Shown here: one piece after another, positions 825 through 51,800 of the stretch
Position numbering within the stretch: the first letter of the stretch is position 1
Layout of the letters: each line of letters opens with the position of its first letter
Source of the DNA: Parasitella parasitica NRRL 2501
Lineage: Eukaryota; Fungi; Mucoromycota
Direction: 5' to 3'
Length of the DNA stretch: 64,000 nucleotides
Assembly (NCBI GenBank): GCA_025201805.1
Contig: MU619286.1
Span: 145,970-209,969, forward strand
Notes under the pieces: model-generated
What the model was told of the DNA's origin: nothing
The model's input: only the letters and a program-made list of their open reading frames with translations
The model's database searches: none
Program-made: the position numbers and the translations under genes

Positions 825-964
825 ATTGATAAAATTAATTGAGAACAAAGCAAGAAGAACAACAAAAACTGTGCACGCGTTTGTTTACTTCCAAAAAAAA
901 TTAACAAGCATAGGGTGACTGGATATTCAGTTCAAATTGTGCCGCATGTGGCAAGTGGATGAGC

Positions 965-1140
965 CTCCAGTGTCACTGATGCATTGATTGCAAATTCTGG
1001 ATGTCAGAAATTCGTCAATCAGTACGGCCAGAAGGTCACCAGCAGCTTCTCTTTTCTTGAAGCAGCGCCACATTATTTTCCAAACATTCTATTCCCAAAC
1101 CCGATAAGAGAAATATGGGATCTGTTTGCACCTGTTTCCT
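965..1140 (-). pseudogene. Fanzor1/TnpB-like fragment (RuvC-II and first half of zinc finger)
   Basis: Manual minus-strand translation gives ISLIGFGNRMFGK, then after a frameshift/deletion KIMWRCFKKREAAGDLLAVLIDEFLTSRICNQC, matching the Fanzor1 pattern (FGxGMFGK...IDEFxTSxxCxxC). Not in the ORF track. Confidence 0.75.
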
Positions 1141-2099
1141 CACAATCATTAGGTATTCGATACTATATAAAAGGTTTTAAGCTTACTTTTTACATTGCTG
1201 TCATCTATTCTTTACTCTCTGAATGTTCCAAGATTAGAATGCTCATATTCACACTTGCTCGTTCAAAATATACTTTGAACATTTTTTTCACATTTTCGAG
1301 AGCAAAAGACAAAGAACGGTGCCTTTATTGCCAATTGGTCAATTTTACCCAAATTACGCTTTTGATTATATCTGTTCGCATCAACAATAAACATCAAAGG
1401 CCAAAACGATCGATACCACAAAGAGGTTCCATTGGCAAGCATTTACGAAAATGTTTACAATATGGTGATTAATGTTCCCTCAAGTATATATGGATCAAAT
1501 TATTAAAGATTAGACCACTTTTCCATACAACATACATGCAACCTTATAGAAAAACTAGAGCCCAAAATATTAGGATCTATCTATGACAACCTCAACTTGA
1601 TCATAAAAATGATTAGTATAAAAGAAATAGTTTTTTTACTGCTCAGTTTCACACAAATAACGCTAGATTTAGCCTTTTGAAAGCAAATATGCTGATGTAT
1701 ACCATCTTATTGCGATGTAGGTGGTTTCTGATGCTCTCTCCCGAGTAATCTAAATATTGATTTCTGTTCGTGCGCTACTAATCAAATTTTTAAATGTCTA
1801 ATTGAATACAGATTCGGACCAAGTCATTGGTGGTTGCTTCTTATTCATATTTTTTTGAACTATTGATTAAGGTGAGTGTAACCCGATATGGAAGTAGTTG
1901 ATTTACATACACAACTAGAGTGATTTTCTTTATGAACTTGCATTCTGATTTATATTCAGCCAAATTGTCAATGTTTTCAACGTTTTCTTCCAATGCGGAT
2001 GATGACTACGAAATAAAAACATCAGCACTAAATTCACCCTCATTTGATAAATGTTTATACCGCCGCACTGAATAAAGATTCAATGAATCACATATATAA

Positions 2100-4522
2100 C
2101 TTGAGTAATTTTGTCAGTTTAAAAAAAATAAATGTCGTTAGTAAAATAATGAATGTCGTTTGGCAAAAAAAAATGCCACTAACCTAAGAAAAATATCTGT
2201 TAGCTCATCAATTATTGTCGTTTAGGATTCAAGAGTACGTTCCTGCATTAAAAGCATTAACCTTGGTGGAAAGTTGTCCTGAGAAAATTGTCGGTTGTCT
2301 GCCTGTCTCCCTCAAGGAGATTAAAATCCTTCTGAAGTTTAATACAGCTGCAAGATCTCGATTCCATAGTCGGTTTTCATTGCTTGAATACATACTGCTT
2401 CGACATCTTGAAGAAGGTTAGTCTTCATGATCCACTGTTACGTGAGTATATATTTTTTCTTTTTACCTTGTTAGGCCATGACACTTTACAGTGGGCATTT
2501 TGTGCTGTTGATATGGGTATAGGGTTTCGGATTGTTTAAACTTTTAATCAAGCTTGCCACCACAGCTTGGGCAGAGGGTATATGTTTTGTATTCGCCAAT
2601 GAGATAAACTTTAAAACCATTCTTTTGCGGCATCTTGACTGGAGGCTCTTTTCGGGAGGTATCGCAGTTCTGTTTAATGATACGGGCACCAACTCCATCA
2701 GTTTCAAGAGTACCTTTGAAGCTTAAGGACCCTTGCTTTTTAAAAGTCTTGATTCTAAGATTGACTATAGATCCCCAGTTTTCGAGTTGACTTCTTGGCA
2801 TCAAAGGTTTCTTGCTTTGAATAATATGATAGTGGATAATCTTGTTATCCAACGTCATGTAGCAAGGAATAAACGTCGTTCTTAATGGGAAACAAAAAAA
2901 TTGCTTTAGCTGCACCGATTCAAACAATTCAGCAAGTTTAACAAAGGCTTTGAAGTGGTTTTCTGGATTAGCGTTTACATCGTAGAAGATTGAGACTATT
3001 TTAAACTTGTAATTTTCTAGGTATGCCGACAAGAAAGTTAGTACTTTTGGTTTTGATGATTCATTCAAAATATCAATGTTGGGCATGCCTTTTTTGGCTA
3101 CAGCATGTATAACTTGGTTACAGGGATTGCAAGCCTTTTGTCGTATCGCTTCTTTAATAGCTCCTTCACTAAACGCATTGGACGCCATTCCTTTACGGAT
3201 GGTATCCGCTCTTTCTTTTTTTTTTTTTTCACAGAGCTTATTTAGTAGAGTTCGCAATCTATTTCCAAAATGGTCTTGATGCACTCATATAGTGCTATCT
3301 GTTGAGCATTCACCAGTTTGATTGGAGTATATTTCGTGTATTCCAAGTAAGATTGTTGTTATTTTGCTATGAACTTCCTGTATTCCGCAGTCGTGTCTTT
3401 AAGCTTAACAGACCTGCGGGTAGTATTTTGGGCAATCAGAGATAAGTACAGTTCCACAAAGAAGTCTTTTCGTACAAATTCATTTTAAGTTGAAATTGCT
3501 GTTCGTAGCCAGCTCTTTCAAGGTTATGTATTTTGAAAAAGCAAATGCGTAGCCTTCTTGTATTTTACATACAAAACTTTGTAAAAAAATTCTATACTTT
3601 TACATTAAATATTAAGTCCTAGAATGTGTTAATATTAAGACTAAAGACCCGAAACCAGGTTATTTAATTGTAAATAGTTACTAATAACCTTTATTTTAAT
3701 TGTCCTGGGGAAGAATTGAACTTCTTCTGTGAGTGATAACTGCATGAGTAGTATTCACTAGATTATACAATGGCTGCAAAAATTCTGGTTTCCATATATT
3801 TTTGATCGTCGTTTTCACTGTCATCACCTTTTTTCTTGTTTTATCATCAAAGCTTTTCGTTGCAGAACCAGGCTTGATAGCAGTAGAGTCAGACTTGGAA
3901 GCAGTAACATTGGGTACATTCATGAAACTATCTGGTTGTGTAGTCTTGCTTGATTCACCTATCATTGGACCTTGAGCATTGGTGTTACGAAAGCCGATCT
4001 TGCTTGTGCTACCAATTTCGTCTTTGGCCCTCTTTCTTGCTTTGTTTACCTATGTAATGGGTGTTTAAAATGCTATGAATCTTCAGTACTTATGAATATA
4101 ATGTGCTAATACATACTTCTTTTTCTAAAGGTTACTGATGGCTGAAAACCATCGTCTGAATTGTCGGTTATAATTTTTTCATGTGTCTACCATCATAGCT
4201 TAAATTAGTAACGTTTTGATCAGAAATTAATATGTATCTTTACCGTTTCTGTTCTTAATAGACTCCTCTTCAGAGCAAGAAGTAAAAGAATCCTTCCGAC
4301 TTTTCGTCATATGTACTTTTCTAAAGGGAATAGACAAAAAATATTTATGGAGGATATATATGCAATGTAGGTACTTGTAACGATAATATGTGCTTTTGAA
4401 TATGGCAATTATTTTTGTCGAAATCGACATTTAATTTTGAGGAAACATCATTTATTTTTTTCCAATGGATGTTTATATTCAATAAACGCCATTTGTTTTT
4501 ACAAAATGGACAAAATTTACAG
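2100..4522 (-). mobile_element. Non-autonomous Fanzor-carrying element with long degenerate TIRs (Mutator/MULE-like architecture)
   Basis: Left end GTAATTTTGTCAGTTTAAAAAAAATAAATGTCGTT... aligns with the reverse complement of 4420-4520 (GTAAATTTTGTCCATTTTGTAAAAACAAATGGCGTT...) over about 100 bp, with AATGTCGTT-like subrepeats about every 21 bp. No clear TSD and no transposase seen. Confidence 0.55.
2229..4200 (-). pseudogene. Fanzor1 (TnpB-derived RNA-guided nuclease), degenerate and internally deleted
   Basis: N-terminal KVMTVKTTIKNIWKPE...THAFAFSKY, then GTLETDGVG, RuvC-II plus zinc finger GFKVYLIGEYKTYTLCPSC, CHGL, and RuvC-III RLWNRDLAAVLNFRRIL ending at TGA 2229-2231. The RuvC-I (DPG) region is missing; frameshifts and an insertion are present. 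Start position approximate. Confidence 0.85.
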
Positions 4523-4989: not shown

Positions 4990-5780
4990 CATAATCCAAA
5001 CTCAAAAGGTAAAAAGTCGACAAATTACAAGTATTCAAAAAGCTCCAAAATGCAAGCAAAAGCTCCAATTGAAATATTCGCCTACTTGGCAGCATCAAGG
5101 GCAATATTACTTCCCAAACAGTAGATAACCAAGCAGTACATCAAGCAGCCTTTGAACAAACTGAAAACTTTGCAATTGTTGGATTTGCAACAGCAAATTC
5201 CAGGATTAAGAAGCCAGAAAATATACTTGGACTGCCAGCCAGTTTAAAATATTTAGAGAGAAAAGATGCTGAAGATGACAGAAGAACAGCCAATGCTACG
5301 AAGTATTATTCATCGGATAAACTACAGGAGCAAGATTTGAATCAAAGATGGTCGCAGCAGCAACAAAACCCTCATCAAAATGGCAAATAATCGAGAGGAG
5401 GTATAGTGAGAATATAAGATCAATCAGACTTGCAACCATACCTGAATGGAAGAAAAAAATTATGGAAAAAGCAGGCGTTGACGCTGTGGTCTTCAAGGCA
5501 TATTCAATCAGGTCTGCCGCATTTGAAAATGGGTTTGACATTGACGATATCAAAATACATGCAAATTGGTGTTTGAAGATAAACATTTTTGAGCGTTATG
5601 ACTCTAAGCCTACAATGAAGATGCATACAAGCACCAAGATAAAACTCTTTTTGTCAGAAAACTAAACCATATTGGAGGCCGGAACGGAACCAAACGAGAT
5701 TGCTTAGGCATGACAGGCAATCCAAGATGTTACCGAAGTGAAGTCTAAAAACGTGGTAATATCTGTCCCTGGTATCATCT
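4990..5780 (+). mobile_element. DIRS-like retroelement remnant (gag-like piece plus tyrosine recombinase C-terminus)
   Basis: ORF 5348-5665 contains IMEKAGVDAVVFKAYSIRSAA-FENGFDIDDIKIHANW...IFERY, the H-x-x-R...H/W...Y box of DIRS-type tyrosine recombinases (HSIR changed to YSIR). Upstream degenerate coding sequence resembles gag. Confidence 0.7.
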
Positions 5781-6064
5781 TTGGTGATTTTCCCCTTCCC
5801 AAAAAAAACCCCCAAGAGTCTTTCATTGCAGTTAGAAATAAGAAAGGGAAATATATAGTTTTTTATTATTATTATGAGAGCATTTACCACGGAGATTGTC
5901 TTAAGCAAGACATGGCGATCACAATTTTTTCAAACTTGAGTATATTTACGACCTCGTTATTCACTTTGACAAGCTTGGTACACTTACTCGTGAACTTGGC
6001 ATAACTTGTTGCACTTGGTAATCAAGGCTATTATCTCCAATTGTATTAGGGTATTAATGATTTA

Positions 6065-7169
6065 TTAGATTTTTTTTGACTTTTTCATTAAATTAGAGTT
6101 GGTTGCAGTAGTTTTTTCAATTGAAGCAAGGTTTTTACGAGGCATGATGGCAAGAGCAGTTTCAATTAGAATGAAGCGAGTGATAAATTTGAAAATAAAT
6201 GCTGCTCCGTACATGAAAATTCTGTATAGTGGTCCGAGATCTAACAAGAATTTAACTGGAAAAAGAATTGAGTTGCTCTCTAACTGGATGTCCAAAAAAG
6301 AAAAAGAAAACTTACTTGGAGGAGGGGCCCACATGTAATTCAAATTGTATCCCGAAGTCAGAGATATTAAATGAAGCAGGGGAGTGTGGAAGAAGCTATA
6401 CAAAAAGAATGACAAAAACAAGATTTCCTTGGATTTAGGTAGCACCACATATCGTCTGCTGTAGATCATATAGATTGGAACAACCAATAACAAAATGTGC
6501 TCTGATTTTTGCATTAGTCGCACATGTCAAATAGGAATCAAATAGAACTTACCAGCGAAAAAGTTAAATGTTTCACCAATCATAGTATGCTCTCTTAAGT
6601 CAGGAAATGCAAGAGCAGCTAAAGCACCCCATTGAAGATGCAGGTAGATGTTGAAGAATACATGTGGGATAGGCGATCTCTTATTAGGATAGACCAAAGT
6701 GAACAAGAGTAACACACCGCTCATATGACATGGCTGCATCATGAACCAAACTCTGTTGCGAATAACCTTGTGAGTCAAAGTCAACAAAAGGGAGAAGATT
6801 AGGGAAAGAGTCATCCCTCTTTCGGTCAATGAGGCCCTGCAAGGCACCTGGAATTCAGTCAAGAGCTTGTAATTTTTGGTTCCCGGCTTGAGCAGACGGC
6901 AAAACATGATGTATGTAGCAAATCCCCAGAAGCTGGCCAAGAACAACAGTTCTATACCATGCTGACGAGGTTCGTTATACCTATTTAAAGATAAATATTT
7001 ATTTGTATAGTGCCCAAAAGCCTTTTGATTGTTGTATGTATATGTACCATGAACCGAAAGAGGACTGAGCCCAATCTGTATCTGCAGGGACATCAGCAGC
7101 AATAGCCTTCACCCAAGACTCAAGCCTCAAAAGTGAAGGTTCAATGAATTCCAAAAAATGAGCCTTCAT
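6065..7169 (-). CDS. TMEM164-family membrane protein (4 exons)
   Basis: ATG 7169 MKAHFLEF...FGSW|YNEPRQHGIE, motifs FMMQPCH, LAFPD, EHILLLVVP, LNYM; multiple hydrophobic helices; three GT-AG introns. Confidence 0.85.
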
Positions 7170-7369: not shown

Positions 7370-8868
7370 ATGTCCAGTTACAGACGAACATACTCCTCTT
7401 CTTCTTCGTCAAGAGACTCATTTTCCAGGCGAAGGTCTCGTAGTCCCACCCGCCCCAGACAAGATTACAACGAGCAAGAAGTACACGTGAAAGAAATATA
7501 GCTTGTATCAAAATCTAATCTTATTCCATTGTTAGAATAGAGCAAGACATACTAGACGAGATGACCATGATAGCCGTGGCAGACATTACGGTAGCCATGA
7601 CAACAGCAATAATAATAGAAGGAATTACCATCACAACAATGACTATCGCCAAGAGTCAAAGCTGGAGCCCAACATTAACGTTGTCTTGAGAAATTTGCCA
7701 GACAAAGCAAGAGAAGTCGATGTATATCTTGTTACAGTGAATATCGCAGCAAAGTCTAATCAATACTTGAACCAAGTAGATTGAGCAGAAATTAAACTCG
7801 ATGGAAGCAAGTATTGATGATGTGTCTTTGATAAAAGACCGTGATTCAGGCGAATCTAGAAAGTTTGCTTTCATTCGTTTCAACAGCGTAGGTCATGCCA
7901 TCCAATTTGTCGAAAAGCACCGCACCTTTGATATGGACTCCTATATTGTGCGCGTAGATTATTGCAAAAAAACCAATGTGGCGGACGACAAGGAGGAATG
8001 GCGTTGTACCAAGGTAAGTTTCGGTGGTTTTAGAAAGTCAAGTGTGTTAATGTGGTCTAGTGCGGAAATTTTAATCCTTCAAGCCGACGAAACTGCCTTG
8101 AGTGCAAGCAGTCTTTTTCATGTAAGTTATCAGCGTGAAGTTCATCTATGGAGGAGGGAAGGTGTTGAATCAGCTTTCTCCATTAGCCTCTGCCGCTGAA
8201 AAGAGATCATACGAAACAGAAACAATTGAGATCAACGATGGCACAAAAGATTCATCAACTGTACCCAGCAAAATGCTGCTTTTACGTCAACTGGATCACT
8301 TGTCAACCGAAGAATCTATTTATAATGCTGTGCATTCTCTTCACGGTGTATGCAGATCAATTTTGATTAGGGATAAATTGACAAGGATGTCGTGCGAATT
8401 CGCCTTTGTGGAATTTTCGGATATTGAGGTATGGACAGTCTAAAATACGATGGTAACTGTGATGTCTAACGACAAGGAGCACGCCAGTCTGCCAGATTAG
8501 CATTGGATTACTGCAGGGAACTTTTAACCATTGACGGCCGTAGAGCAACTGTGTCATTTGCCAACCCAGATAGCTTTATCCCAGTTTATGGCCAATCTGA
8601 ATGGTTCATTCCAGCAGATGCGATGGATGGTCTTTGGGCTTACTGGGATAAATCAGCTTATGCTTCCGAGTATTCATATGCTATTGTGCAAGAGAAACAG
8701 CGTAGAGAAGAAGAACTGAAAAGAAGCAAGGAGGAGGAGTCAAGGAAGGCTCAGCAAGTGAAGGAAAGTTTGGAGGATGATTTAAGTGCGTTTTACGCGG
8801 ATATGGGTGATCTTGTTGCTGATGAAGATGCCAATTCTGGTATTTTTGCAGTTCCCAAGTTAAAATAA
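7370..8868 (+). CDS. RBM5/RBM10-like RNA-binding protein (RS-rich N-terminus, RRM, RanBP2-type zinc finger, RRM), multi-exon
   Basis: RNP motifs SRKFAFIRF and SCEFAFVEF, finger W-R-C-T-K-C-G-N-F-N...RRNCLEC split by an intron, several GT-AG introns, stop at 8868. Confidence 0.85.
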
Positions 8869-41902: not shown

Positions 41903-42576
41903 ATGACCGTATGTACCAGAAAGATATATAAACGAGTGAATTGAATGATGGGACATATTATGATGATGGATGGATGTTATTAAGCTGACGGTTCATTTGA
42001 ATGGATGAATACCATGAGTGGATGGATGAATAGAGAGATAAATATGATATCTGGCTACTATTTTGTCAAAACAAAAGTCAGCTTACTACTCACCATCATT
42101 ATATGTTGTCAAATGCAATAAATTATGCCATCATTGGATCACTTTTCATATATCAATTTAATTCTGCATAATATAAATTGAGATATTAATGTGGTTTTTT
42201 GCTGTCTAGTTGGCTGTTGATCTTCTTAACCCCTCCGTTGAACACGAGAAGCGCTCTCACAAGCTCAAGAGACTTGTGCAATCTCCCAATTCTTACTTTA
42301 TGGACGTCAAATGTCCTGGTAAGTAAATTCGTCTAGCTTAGAAAGCTTGTTCTAATTGAATTACTATCTTTTATACAGGCTGTTTAAACATTAGCACCGT
42401 TTTTAGCCACGCTCAAACTGTCGTTTTGTGTTCTTCTTGCGCTACTGTCTTGTGCCAACCTACTGGTGGTCGTGCTCGCTTGACTGAAGGTAATTTTCTG
42501 TTTATACCTTATACCTACTCATCTCTAATTCTTCGCTTTTTTCGCAGGCTGCTCCTTCCGTAGAAAGGCCAATTAA
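41903..42576 (+). CDS. RPS27: 40S ribosomal protein eS27, 4 exons
   Basis: MT|LAVDLLNPS...[21 protein letters not shown]|[32 protein letters not shown]|CSFRRKAN*; not in the ORF track because the exons are short. Confidence 0.96.
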
Positions 42577-42876
42577 GCTTTTATTAATGAAAACTGTCTT
42601 GAAACTGCTTCATAATCTCTGCTTTATATGGCTCAACCCGGTGATGTTAATTCTTTTTTTACAATGTAAACTATCCACAACGTTTCTGTTTACTGTTTTT
42701 TCTTTTATTTTAACAATAAAAGCATAAAGAGCAAACAAAACCTATATATACATAACCATACATTTTGTGCTATTTTGTTAATAAATATAGGTAAATCTGA
42801 AAGCCGGAATAACTTTATCTTTCGATGCCTTCATTCGGGTTTTAACTTGCAATCCACTGAGAAAATTATGCATTAA

Positions 42877-44388
42877 GGGCATCTCCAACAGAGATGCTAA
42901 ACAAAAAACCATTTAAAGCGCCCCCCCCCCCCCTTTTTTTTTTCCAACCCGGAAATGTTTTTGCTTTTTTGTCTCTGAAGCTCTTTGAATTACTCCCTTG
43001 GCTCTTGAATCCATTGTATTCTCTTTTACTATTTTTTTCTTATCTTTTCTTCTTTATGCAAAGCCGTTCTACTTTCAAAACAGGAGCTGGTGCTCACTAC
43101 TTTTATTCAACCCATATTTATATATCTCATACTATAAACCTCACACTTCTAACATTAATATGAGCATTCAGGACAGAAATACTGGCCATTTTAAAAAATG
43201 TTAATAAAGTTTGTATAGTTAGTTAAACTTTATACAATGGAAAAAAGATCTTTAAGTAAGTTCATATCATATAGTTTTAATTTAGTAATGCCTTAGAACT
43301 TAACAAGTTATATTAGGAATGCTATCTACACGGATGGTTATTCAGTTTCTTTTCTCTTCTCAATAATTACAGCAAAAAAAAAGAAAGACTCTCTTCCCGT
43401 AAAGCCATCTGACCTGAAAACAGATATTGACAATGGGTGCCAAGTGTGGGTGGTAGACCCTGGAATTAGCACGGTTTTTACTATAGTTGACCAAGCTGGT
43501 AGAGTGAGATCACTTGATCAAAAGGAGTATTATCACTTGTGTGGGTTTAATGATGCAGCTCACATTCGAAAGATTCATCAAGCGAAGCACACAAACACTC
43601 ATAGAATGATAACAGAACTGGATTCATTAAAAACCGGAGAAGTTTCAAAATTCTTGATTGCTTGCATAAAGCGTATAGAATCCTACGATACAATGTATGA
43701 ATTTTATAACAGAGGCCTTTGGTAAGTGTAGCAAACTCTTGTACATATTTTAAAAATGTGTTAACCAAATGGAATAGGTCTTCAAAATTAAAGTTTAGAT
43801 GTTATAGAAAGAAGCAAAAAGCCTTCAGCGAAATAGTCAAGATGTTTACTCATGATAGCATCAAATGTCGTACGGGTGTGTCTACCAATGTGAAGACAAC
43901 AACGAGAAACAACAATTCTTACTCTCGCCCTCCACCACTTGATGGATCAGTGAAGGCAAATAAAACCATCATTGCCTATAGAGATGGAAGGTTTTCACCT
44001 ACCATGAGAGGCAAAAGATCTGGACCTACAAAGACTATCATAAAAGCTCTTCAAAAATGTAAAGAAAATCGTGGTGTTGCAGTCCAAATGGTAAACGAAT
44101 ACCTCACCAGTCATGTCTGCAACAACTGCAAAAAAGAATGGCTGCAAAAAACATCCTCAACAAGAAACAATGACGCTCGTCTTTCACCATTCCAGCGTTC
44201 TGAATCAAAAGAATAATTGCAAGCATTGTGTGTCATTGATATTACTCTTTGATACGCCATGGGTATTCGGCTTATCCTATACACCATTACAGGTGAGTAA
44301 AATTGTCCAAAAAAAAAAGAAAGTATCATCCTCTCACCAATTTTCTTTTGGAAATTTTGTAAAATTAGCACCTCCGTTGGAGATGCTC
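42877..44388 (+). mobile_element. Non-autonomous PIF/Harbinger-type element (1512 bp) carrying a Fanzor1 gene remnant
   Basis: TIRs GGGCATCTCCAACAGAGATGCTAA (42877-42900) and TTAGCACCTCCGTTGGAGATGCTC (44365-44388), 21/24 match; TAA directly outside both ends (42874-42876, 44389-44391). Confidence 0.9.
43310..44230 (+). pseudogene. Fanzor1 (TnpB-like) remnant with a spliceosomal intron
   Basis: IYTDGYSVSFLF, RuvC-I VWVVDPG (D codon 43456), EYYHLCGF, intron 43722-43777 splitting a Trp codon, IIAYRDGRF, RuvC-II VNEYLTSHVCNNC (E codon 44097). N-terminus and RuvC-III are missing. Confidence 0.88.
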
Positions 44389-45482
44389 TAAGCAGGCTGC
44401 CTTGAAAGTTTCAAGTTTTGACAAGCGTGCATTCATCCTCCGCTTACCGTATTTTTTTTTTTTGAGTTTAATTTACTCCATTGAATACCAAGAAATTAAG
44501 ATGATTCAGAATCTATTGGCAATCTACAAACTCCATAAATTCATAATTACGCCTTTTTGTAGTTTATTTCGACAAGCAAAGAATTTAATGCAGGCATCTT
44601 TGTACTAGATTAAATGCATCCGGATGGTATTTTGCAAGAGTAAATTGGTTGATCTATACAATAAGGTTTATTTGAGTTGCGAAGGGTCTTGAGCTTGTGA
44701 TATCCAAGGACAAAGCTTGACATTTGGGTGTACTGCGTCTTTAGTGTTAATTGACATTTTTCTCAGGATACAATTCGTGCGTTACGCTATACCAAAAACG
44801 TAAGAGCACTGGAGTACTATATTTGCTGTAAAGTCTGGTATGTATATATACAGTATATGCGTTTTGATTGTCTCACAAAGCGGAAAGAATAGCCTATTCA
44901 ACTTTCTGCTCCGCAAGGCAATTTCTCTTTGATTTGAAATTCGTAAATCAGTCTTTTTAGCATTTTATCAAGTTTATATCTTTGGTTCCGTGTTGAATTA
45001 CATTGCACTATTTTGCTTATGCCGTATATTGTATATACTAGACGCGTATGTTTTTTTTAAAGAAAATGTGGATATATTGTGTTTTGTCGTACGCCAGTGT
45101 ATGACAACAGCAATGATTTGTATTTCCTGTGCTAACCTTATTGATAAGCACGAAAACAACTTTGAAAAATGCACATGTATAATTTTCGCTGTTGTTCGAG
45201 TTATGCAATACAAATTTTGCCATATTGCCAAAAAGAGTGCTGCCCTGACGGATCTACATGAAAAAAGCCCATTTCGGATTTTTTGTATATAAAATCGTGG
45301 GAAAAAGTACTTGTTGGCCCTTCCGTTAAAGTATCATTTTATTTATGTATGTGTTACAAGAAAAACTTTTTTTTTTATAATGTTTATTTTATATAATTCA
45401 TGTCAACATGAAAATATTGGGGTTTATGGGTATTTTGTACAATAAAATAAGGATAAGAGAATAATATGTATAAGAAATAATG

Positions 45483-50723: not shown

Positions 50724-51800
50724 ATGGACCGCAATATTATTGAAGATGATTTGATCCTTTTATTGCATGCTAGAAGTATGCGTGGACCTACCAAAAGACA
50801 AAGGGTAAAGTATAAACGTTTGATTTTGAGGGATTGACAGATCAAAAGTGCAAGGCAATGTTTCGCTTCACTCTTGGAGAAATCAAGCGTATCTGCAAAG
50901 CTTTAAAGCTCGATTCCATTGTCAGATTTAATGGTGTCCAAGCAGAGAATCGTTTTACGATGGCTATGCTTTTGTACACTCACGCCTCTCCTCGAAGATT
51001 TGTAGACATAAGCGAATACTTTGGTGTCTCTGAATGCAACTTATCTAGAATATTGAACGGGGCATTTGAATTAATTATTGAAAAAACCAAGTACGGTCTG
51101 GAGTTTGATGAATCGCAATTCTCAAAAGAAAACTGAGAGCGATTTTCAAAAGCAATTTTCAAAAGCAATTTTTGAAAGAGAAGCATACTATTCCCATATC
51201 GTTGGATTTATCGACGGTATTATGCAGCATATATGCCGACCCACTGGTAATACCGCGCAGAAAAACATGTACAACGACTGGAAGCACATCCATTGCAACA
51301 AGCTTCAGGCAACATCTACAACTGATGGTATTACTACTAGCTTGTGTGGACCATACGTTAAACGACGCAACTACCGAGGAATGTTGATCGAAAGCCAAAT
51401 AAGTGAAAGACTATCGGCCCACTTCAACAGCATTTCTCCTAACAAAAAGTCTGCTACATCTAGCGAAGAAGGATACTCTGGGGGTTGTAATATAGTTGTT
51501 CCGTACAGCTGGCCATTTACTAACGAACTTGAACAAGAAACAAACAAGTCTTTATCCAAAGTACGTGTAGCAATTGAAATGGAATTTGGCAATGTATCTC
51601 AGTACATCAATGGATGCAAATGGAAGTATGGAAATAAGTTAAAGCAAACAACACCTGAAAGAAAATACGTCCTTGCTGCGATTTTCATACTTGCATGAAT
51701 GGATAGCCCATTTCTGCAATGTTTAAGTTAACACCAGCGACTGTCGAAGTATATCTCGAACAACTAATGAGGCCCAGAAATAATAATAATTTTACAGAAT
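50724..51800 (+). pseudogene. PIF/Harbinger DDE transposase (HARBI1-like), frameshifted
   Basis: CKAMFRFT, IVGFIDG..HICRP, YNDWKHIH..KLQA..TTDG, CGPY, EGY, NKSLSKVRVAIEMEFG; stop/frameshift near 51136. Confidence 0.88.

Follow-up and report, generated by a model that had tools for sequence, protein, structure and literature searches.

The insertion at positions 42877-44388 of a 64,000-nucleotide stretch of Parasitella parasitica NRRL 2501 DNA (contig MU619286.1, forward-strand positions 145,970 to 209,969, assembly GCA_025201805.1; the whole stretch is referred to as the window) is very probably the dead relic of a PIF/Harbinger-type transposon, a non-autonomous copy with two main deletions that belongs to a family whose full-length form of about 3.6 kb carries a Fanzor1 passenger gene. 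An earlier sequence-only reading had described a 1512-bp insertion with 24-bp terminal inverted repeats (TIRs, 21/24), flanked by TAA on both sides and lying about 300 bp past the RPS27 gene, and the element was re-read as it had been described. By direct reading it measures 1512 bp, and its two TIRs, of 24 nt each, are complementary at 21/24 positions with three mismatches. The 5' TIR (plus strand, 42877-42900, GGGCATCTCCAACAGAGATGCTAA), which is also an imperfect palindrome by itself, and the 3' TIR (minus strand, 44365-44388, plus-strand letters TTAGCACCTCCGTTGGAGATGCTC) were found by direct reading, by the repeat finder and by the genome pattern count; the repeat finder gave 25 nt at 88% once the adjacent A/T was counted. 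The TAA triplets directly read outside them, at 42874-42876 and 44389-44391 (no strand), are the putative target-site duplication (TSD). No transposase is present between the ends, as had been claimed.

The 22-nt terminus pattern occurred 65 times in the 32.8-Mb assembly while the reversed control occurred 0 times, and a BLAST search of the element against the genome gave 70 matches with 76-100% identity; thus the element is not a product of chance. The genome-wide search for full-length copies, proposed in the sequence-only reading, recovered a longest copy of 3655 bp at C70:62495-66149, with TTA on both sides. This C70 copy contains one Fanzor1-like reading frame over approx. 2.6 kb, which is frameshifted, and encodes no transposase. 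At full length an element of the family measures about 3.6 kb and has a single passenger gene. This gene encodes a Fanzor1, a eukaryotic RNA-guided nuclease related to TnpB, of roughly 830-860 amino acids, and contains at least two coding introns.

Comparison with the C70 copy located what the window copy has lost. In the blastn alignment, element positions 85-360 correspond to 394-670 of the C70 copy and positions 357-1259 to 2430-3285, so that positions 670-2430 are absent from the window. The junction of this large internal deletion lies at 43233-43236, where about 1.76 kb, coding for the N-terminus, WED and REC, is gone. At 44135-44136 a 101-bp deletion (positions 3285-3387 of the C70 copy) has removed the second CxxC and the WNRD motif of RuvC-III, and a third, small deletion of 14-17 nt follows 44160, where three runs have insertions relative to the window. 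A 3956-nt contig of a related organism contains 1795 and 101 extra nt exactly at the two main junctions. The loss of the N-terminus and of RuvC-III, from which an inactive copy had been deduced earlier, is therefore borne out, since both regions are deleted relative to the C70 copy; the window copy is not an active nuclease and no Fanzor activity can remain in it. For the preceding 5' non-coding part of the element (42901-43232, plus strand), blastn showed homology with the C70 copy at positions 3-90 and 394-670.

The large-deletion junction is common to four other loci (C50:3785, C122, C86 and C74), and the copy at C50:3785-5312, 91% identical to the window copy, also shares its 101-bp deletion and its GGG terminus. 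Because of these shared junctions it can be inferred that the deleted form itself transposed, and the spread of such a crippled form would thus have been independent of a working Fanzor. The middle exon had stops in every scored copy except that of C70. Stops, frameshifts or deletions were present in every family copy read or scored, and no intact Fanzor1 gene of the family was found among the copies read; neither set is an exhaustive census.

Some further observations concern the distribution of the family. In the related organisms X8 and X11 a full-length family copy was found in the 3956-nt contig, at about 5x single-copy depth and about 96% identical to the window copy. In the same organisms the RPS27 exon is approx. 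94-96% identical and the intergenic DNA is not alignable at 85%. These values hint that the family has passed from species to species recently or horizontally, and a mycoparasite would be a plausible setting for that. At another locus (L078, G000:C32:227000-235800) about 8 kb lie between a family 5' end at 8583-8650 and the homologous segment that follows (564-191), as if an insertion were nested within a family member of the transposase type.

The coding content of the window copy was assigned with a profile (A1, 608 positions) built from 28 homologues that a search with the C-terminal part of a sister copy had found; every search was made with individual, unjoined exons. The frames 43297-43722 and 43710-44213 matched this Fanzor1 profile at positions 291-432 and 433-526, with 100.9 and 100.3 bits, respectively. 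The surviving two exons of the window copy are Fanzor1 homologues. The exon 43317-43721 (plus strand) bears TDG and the RuvC-I aspartate in VVDPG, which is preceded by the TDG strand, and both motifs sit on conserved columns of A1. The exon 43778-44135 (plus strand), shortened by the deletion, bears the RuvC-II glutamate in NEYLTS, on the invariant E column of the profile (DEYxTS type), and the first CxxC (CNNC). The remnant of the C-terminal tail with the ancestral stop TAA at 44214-44216 follows on the same strand (44136-44216, with the 14-17 nt gone after 44160). The complete zinc finger (TNB, CxxC..CxxC) is lacking in the window copy, where the first CxxC stands alone, and the domain scored 19.2 bits against the cut-off of 26.3 bits (PF07282), since it is truncated. 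The C70 sister copy has both halves and matched Cas12f1-like_TNB (PF07282) above the cut-off, with 36.2 bits. The RuvC-III aspartate (WNRDxNAAxNI) is likewise missing in the window and is present in sister copies as WNRDIMAAKNI. Thus the Fanzor1 remnant recognised before by its TDG, DPG and EYLTS-CxxC motifs is supported by about 100 bits in each exon.

Profile A1 matched the solved Fanzor1 proteins SpuFz1 (E 7e-60), GtFz1 (3.5e-49) and PpFz1 (1.9e-44), and matched TnpB, TranC and Cas12f far more weakly than the Fanzor1 structures; the C-terminal piece of the sister copy also matches GtFz1. A phmmer search of the PDB with the window RuvC-I exon and with P0022 gave nothing meaningful, and a profile search was needed instead. 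P0022, an 863-aa protein of Rhizomucor pusillus, is the closest intact homologue and is collinear with the 3655-bp copy (tblastn E 9e-51). The fold comparison was made on P0022, not on the window fragment: in its AlphaFold2 model (predicted local distance difference test score, pLDDT, 69) the top seven Foldseek matches in the PDB were SpuFz1, GtFz1 and PpFz1, with E values of 1e-19 to 2e-15. A lack of the TnpB/Cas12 RuvC fold, named earlier as the finding that would speak against a Fanzor, was thus not what we found, as the closest intact homologue folds like the Fanzor1 structures. Annotated P. parasitica proteins (KAI86..., locus tags BD408DRAFT) are 84-94% identical to the C-terminus of the family.

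An RNA-type run, a DNA run and two relatives were aligned on 42400-44900. The RNA-type run behaves as RNA, with a depth of about 43,700 on the RPS27 exon, almost none in intergenic DNA and the RPS27 intron skipped. Three introns on the plus strand of the element were skipped in RNA contigs, and none of the three joints was seen in the DNA run. Intron A (43256-43316, 61 nt, GTAAGT..TTAG) was skipped by an RNA contig with 101 nt on its shorter side, and its sites were present in most of 12 copies. Intron B (43722-43777, 56 nt, GTAAGT..ATAG), the skipping of which joins the adjacent A1 positions 432|433, has its sites in 16-17 of 17 copies. Intron C (44293-44368, 76 nt, GTGAGT..TTAG) lies in the 3' untranslated region (UTR), with its acceptor inside the 3' TIR; four RNA contigs skipped 76-77 nt here, and among 38 copies the donor was present in 22 and the acceptor in 32. 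Family copies are therefore transcribed and spliced. The single spliceosomal intron of the sequence-only reading, which is intron B, is real, but the second coding intron and the intron of the 3' UTR had been missed, as had the small deletion at 44160.

Two other features of the RNA data are noted here. The summed depth of RNA contigs over 42988-43155, in the 5' non-coding part, was 5,600-7,000 versus 300-1,200 over the Fanzor exons, approx. tenfold, and may come from 5' fragments lying within highly expressed transcripts elsewhere. One RNA contig (depth 444) skipped 61 nt at 44277-44337, with CT..AC borders equal to GT..AG on the minus strand, which suggests spliced antisense transcripts over the 3' end of family copies.

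The assignment of the family to the PIF/Harbinger type is supported, because a sister element with the same ends holds remnants of a PIF-type transposase and because TWA stands at 53 of 64 termini. In this sister element (C71:10963-12821, 1859 bp) the outermost 100 bp on the 5' side and 244 bp on the 3' side (80% identity) are common to the Fanzor element, and its interior contains frameshifted Plant_tran (PF04827) pieces which score 33, 79 and 76 bits and span positions 2-203 of the model; no Myb/SANT-like second open reading frame (ORF) was evident in this 1.86-kb remnant. A second locus, on C98, has Plant_tran pieces at 81280-81880 and, further along the same strand, a family 3' end at 83070-83298. 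Four elements of about 600 bp resembling miniature inverted-repeat transposable elements (MITEs; C37, C46, C112 and C116) have the same TIRs and matching TSDs with different interiors. The same 22-24-nt ends thus bound Fanzor-bearing, transposase-bearing and MITE-like subfamilies. Among the triplets at the 64 distinct termini 27 were TTA and 26 TAA, and the flanks show a weak preference for A at -5 and T at -4. A PIF-type DDE transposase acting in trans on the 24-nt ends, with TWA as its insertion target, probably mobilised the element.

Several results weigh against this assignment. The triplets were identical in 12 of 18 complete elements, all four MITE-like ones among them, while 9 of 18 would be expected if TAA and TTA were paired at random, so a strict 3-bp duplication is not proven. 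Among the copies read, to which the transposase loci on C98, C87 and C49 do not belong, none was an intact autonomous element encoding a transposase between these ends. Seven DDE_Tnp_4 loci exist in the genome, one of them at window 51078-51698; they were considered as the transposase partner and ruled out, since the 1.5 kb around each of them lacks a family TIR. An empty site was looked for and not seen: the other DNA run (X2) has the same insertion, and in X8 and X11 the search met intergenic DNA which is not alignable at >=85%. Hence, from the earlier claim of a PIF/Harbinger element with TAA duplications, the superfamily gains from the transposase-bearing sister and the TWA preference, and the duplication is weakened by the unmatched pairs, which could reflect recombination between copies or assembly chimeras.

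The same unmatched pairs would fit a TIR transposon of another superfamily or mechanism, for which TWA would be a preferred target or a part of the terminus and the palindromic ends would act like the hairpins of IS200/IS605-type elements. Such elements are the ancestral home of TnpB. Among the six non-identical pairs of the 18, four still have TWA on both sides, which would rarely arise from point mutation. Each end is a near-perfect palindrome with a 9-bp stem, AGCATCTCC-AAC-GGAGATGCT, which could form a hairpin in single-stranded DNA or RNA, and the missing intact PIF transposase agrees with this explanation as well. However, about half of the family copies have an imperfect stem (position 14 being A or G; the 3' arm having C or T). 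In addition, several subfamilies with different interiors have genuine inverted repeats in common as their ends, as in MITEs mobilised by a transposase, neither a Y1 nor a serine recombinase turned up among the family copies read, and the Plant_tran remnants stand between the same ends in the sister element and in the same layout at the second locus. We therefore consider another superfamily improbable and retain the PIF/Harbinger-type assignment.

The 3' end of the element is of interest as the possible source of a guide RNA. The 3' UTR (44217-44388, plus strand), the candidate omegaRNA region, agrees with the family consensus at 95-98%, and this agreement ends exactly at 44388 plus TWA. The conservation thus stops precisely at the element boundary, as had been expected from an alignment of 3' ends, though it would do so for any transposon. 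Within the genome the 3' UTR showed no extra conservation beyond that of the neighbouring coding sequence. An Rfam scan of 42800-44500 gave no omegaRNA family, the sole match being a chance miRNA. Folding of the 3' UTR, which was done on the unspliced form, gave an unremarkable and uninformative z of -1.9 for the plus strand of the 3' region; the minus strand of 44200-44391 had z -3.6 versus shuffles, due largely to the TIR palindrome and to pairing of A/T tracts. In a comparison of the 3' end between species, the Rhizomucor pusillus P0022 locus (L085) showed neither such a TIR nor any similarity at the nucleotide level. A GATA gene beside the Fanzor both here and in Rhizomucor was considered as synteny and rejected as a coincidence, since only the zinc-finger domain matches.

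Guide RNAs of Fanzor1 come from the 3' UTR, overlap the TIR and extend ~15 nt past the TSD, with the TIR and the TSD within the scaffold (PMC10711439, PMC10530073), and known target-adjacent motifs (TAMs) of Fanzor1 are CATA, TTAA(N) and ATN (PMC11423790). By analogy, the intact ancestor would have made an omegaRNA from its 3' end, reading over the TIR and the TSD into the flank, and this RNA would have let Fanzor1 cut empty ATTWA-type sites. The sequence-only reading had placed the start of the guide at or just after TAA. It seems reasonable that the guide of the family would start after TAA (GCAGGC... in the window copy), the second of these options, because the scaffold of published Fanzor1 reRNAs takes in both TIR and TSD (PMC10711439). 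It is similarly reasonable that the TAM of the family would end in TWA, perhaps as ATTWA. The earlier promise of a testable guide and TAM prediction can be kept only after reconstruction, as all copies read or scored are broken.

There is a real, if less than even, chance that the 3' region is no more than the intron-bearing 3' UTR of a messenger, derived from the PIF backbone, and that an omegaRNA, if any, is not at 44230-44388, the scaffold proposed earlier. Intron C fills most of that interval and is spliced in the four RNA contigs, and the transposase-bearing C71 element has the same 3' end, donor and acceptor included. The ordinary plus-strand fold, with the minus strand folding better, and the lack of an Rfam match agree with a plain UTR too. 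However, the characterised Fanzor1 loci do make their guide RNA from the 3' UTR, unspliced contigs over the 3' region also exist, and contigs of messenger type cannot reveal small RNAs. It might also be that splicing of intron C sets the fate of the transcript as Fanzor messenger or guide RNA, or even gives rise to the mature omegaRNA, in which an upstream scaffold would be fused with the final 20 nt of the TIR; together with a first clean pairing of Fanzor1 with PIF/Harbinger and a TAM mirroring ATTWA this is a long shot. If true, the splicing of intron C would be a eukaryote-specific layer of omegaRNA biogenesis.

The flank of the window copy is transcribed at a low level. The RPS27 gene lies upstream, where 42405-42491 matches Ribosomal_S27e with 48.6 bits and is followed by a short intron, and the stop of the last exon (42574-42576) is 300 bp upstream of the element. 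Downstream, a read-through exon was found by an RNA contig in the unique flank (44392-44837, plus strand, with a GTATGT donor at 44838). This contig of 916 nt aligned on 44367-44837 with zero differences, bounded by the acceptor of intron C and by the 44838 donor, and therefore this very copy is the source of a read-through transcript, on the plus strand and at a low level. The rest of the contig, 426 nt, did not align on 44838-44900, and the downstream exon was not located there.

One could take this transcript, which runs from inside the element over the 3' TIR into 44369-44837 and is spliced onward at 44838, as a sign that the window copy has been co-opted by the host as a promoter, exon or regulatory piece beside RPS27. 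However, the depth of the read-through contig is about 11 versus about 43,700 for the RPS27 exon, no ORF is evident in the 44369-44837 flank, chimeric read-through is common for transposon insertions, and the window copy is without sign of constraint and has many private substitutions. Co-option is thus very improbable, and the window copy is inert debris beside RPS27.

Other Fanzor- and Harbinger-like sequences were seen as well. A second, much weaker Fanzor-like relic is present on the minus strand of the window at 930-3284 (frames 2547-3284, 2232-2417 and 930-1088, profile E 6e-6 to 4e-5). At another locus (L052, G000:C25:19836-23333) the plus strand of 1036-3223 contains a Fanzor1 paralogue of another family, with 33% identity and without these TIRs; its three long open pieces correspond to profile positions 8-290, 292-398 and 430-581, and it may be an intact gene. 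On the plus strand of the window at 50834-51698 two overlapping ORFs match DDE_Tnp_4 with 39.4 bits, with no family TIRs nearby; they represent a Harbinger-type transposase remnant or a domesticated gene, and by eye they resemble the transposase motif of MCi-5 (NGWKH..TPDGIT) printed in the supplement of Bao and Jurka (PMC3627910).

The significance of the family lies in the combination of a Fanzor1 on a PIF/Harbinger backbone with defined ends and a TWA target, transposase-bearing sisters and MITE-like derivatives, in a species whose PpFz1 has been biochemically characterised. It is a reasonable substrate to ask whether the TAMs of Fanzors track the insertion site of the host transposon, and it could show how an intron-bearing RNA polymerase II gene and a guide RNA have one 3' end in common, in either case once the element has been reconstructed.

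The solved Fanzor1 proteins SpuFz1 (8GKH), GtFz1 (9CER) and PpFz1 (9CF0, also from P. parasitica) have a domain order like that of the family, and their motifs (RuvC-I D, RuvC-II E, CxxC..CxxC and RuvC-III WNRD) are present in sister copies, whereas the window copy covers only profile positions 291-526 of 608. PpFz1 represents a different family, as the C-terminal piece of the family gave no phmmer match to it, and the published PpFz1 omegaRNA is without the TIR core described here. The Fanzor1 elements of SfAV and of lepidopteran viruses are non-autonomous TIR elements with Fanzor1 only and with short TSDs, and their reRNA extends ~15 nt beyond the TIR and TSD (Yoon et al. 2023, PMC10711439). 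They served as the model for our guide prediction, but their TSD is TTAN, their superfamily is unknown and the expression of their reRNA was experimentally shown.

The autonomous relatives among PIF/Harbinger elements encode a Plant_tran/DDE_Tnp_4 transposase. As in the non-autonomous elements of this superfamily and in Tourist-like MITEs, the family has short TIRs, TWA sites, deletion derivatives and MITE-like copies of about 600 bp with the same ends; unlike typical PIF/Harbinger elements, it carries an RNA-guided nuclease as a passenger, no Myb-like second ORF was seen, and the TSDs are identical in 12 of 18 only.

The capture of Fanzor1 by diverse DNA transposons, also in Mucorales, has been known since 2013 (PMC3627910), and a 2026 review lists Harbinger among the Fanzor carriers (PMC13565253). 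A close precedent is MCi-5 of Mucor circinelloides, in which Fanzor1 and a Harbinger-type transposase are found in one element that has no recognisable TIRs and putative 6-bp TSDs (Bao and Jurka 2013, PMC3627910). In both cases a Fanzor1 of Mucorales is associated with a PIF/Harbinger-type DDE transposase. Unlike MCi-5, the present family has clear 24-nt TIRs and TWA flanks, and in the copies read the Fanzor and the transposase are found in separate deletion derivatives. The family is thus a cleaner example than MCi-5, but it is the same kind of thing.

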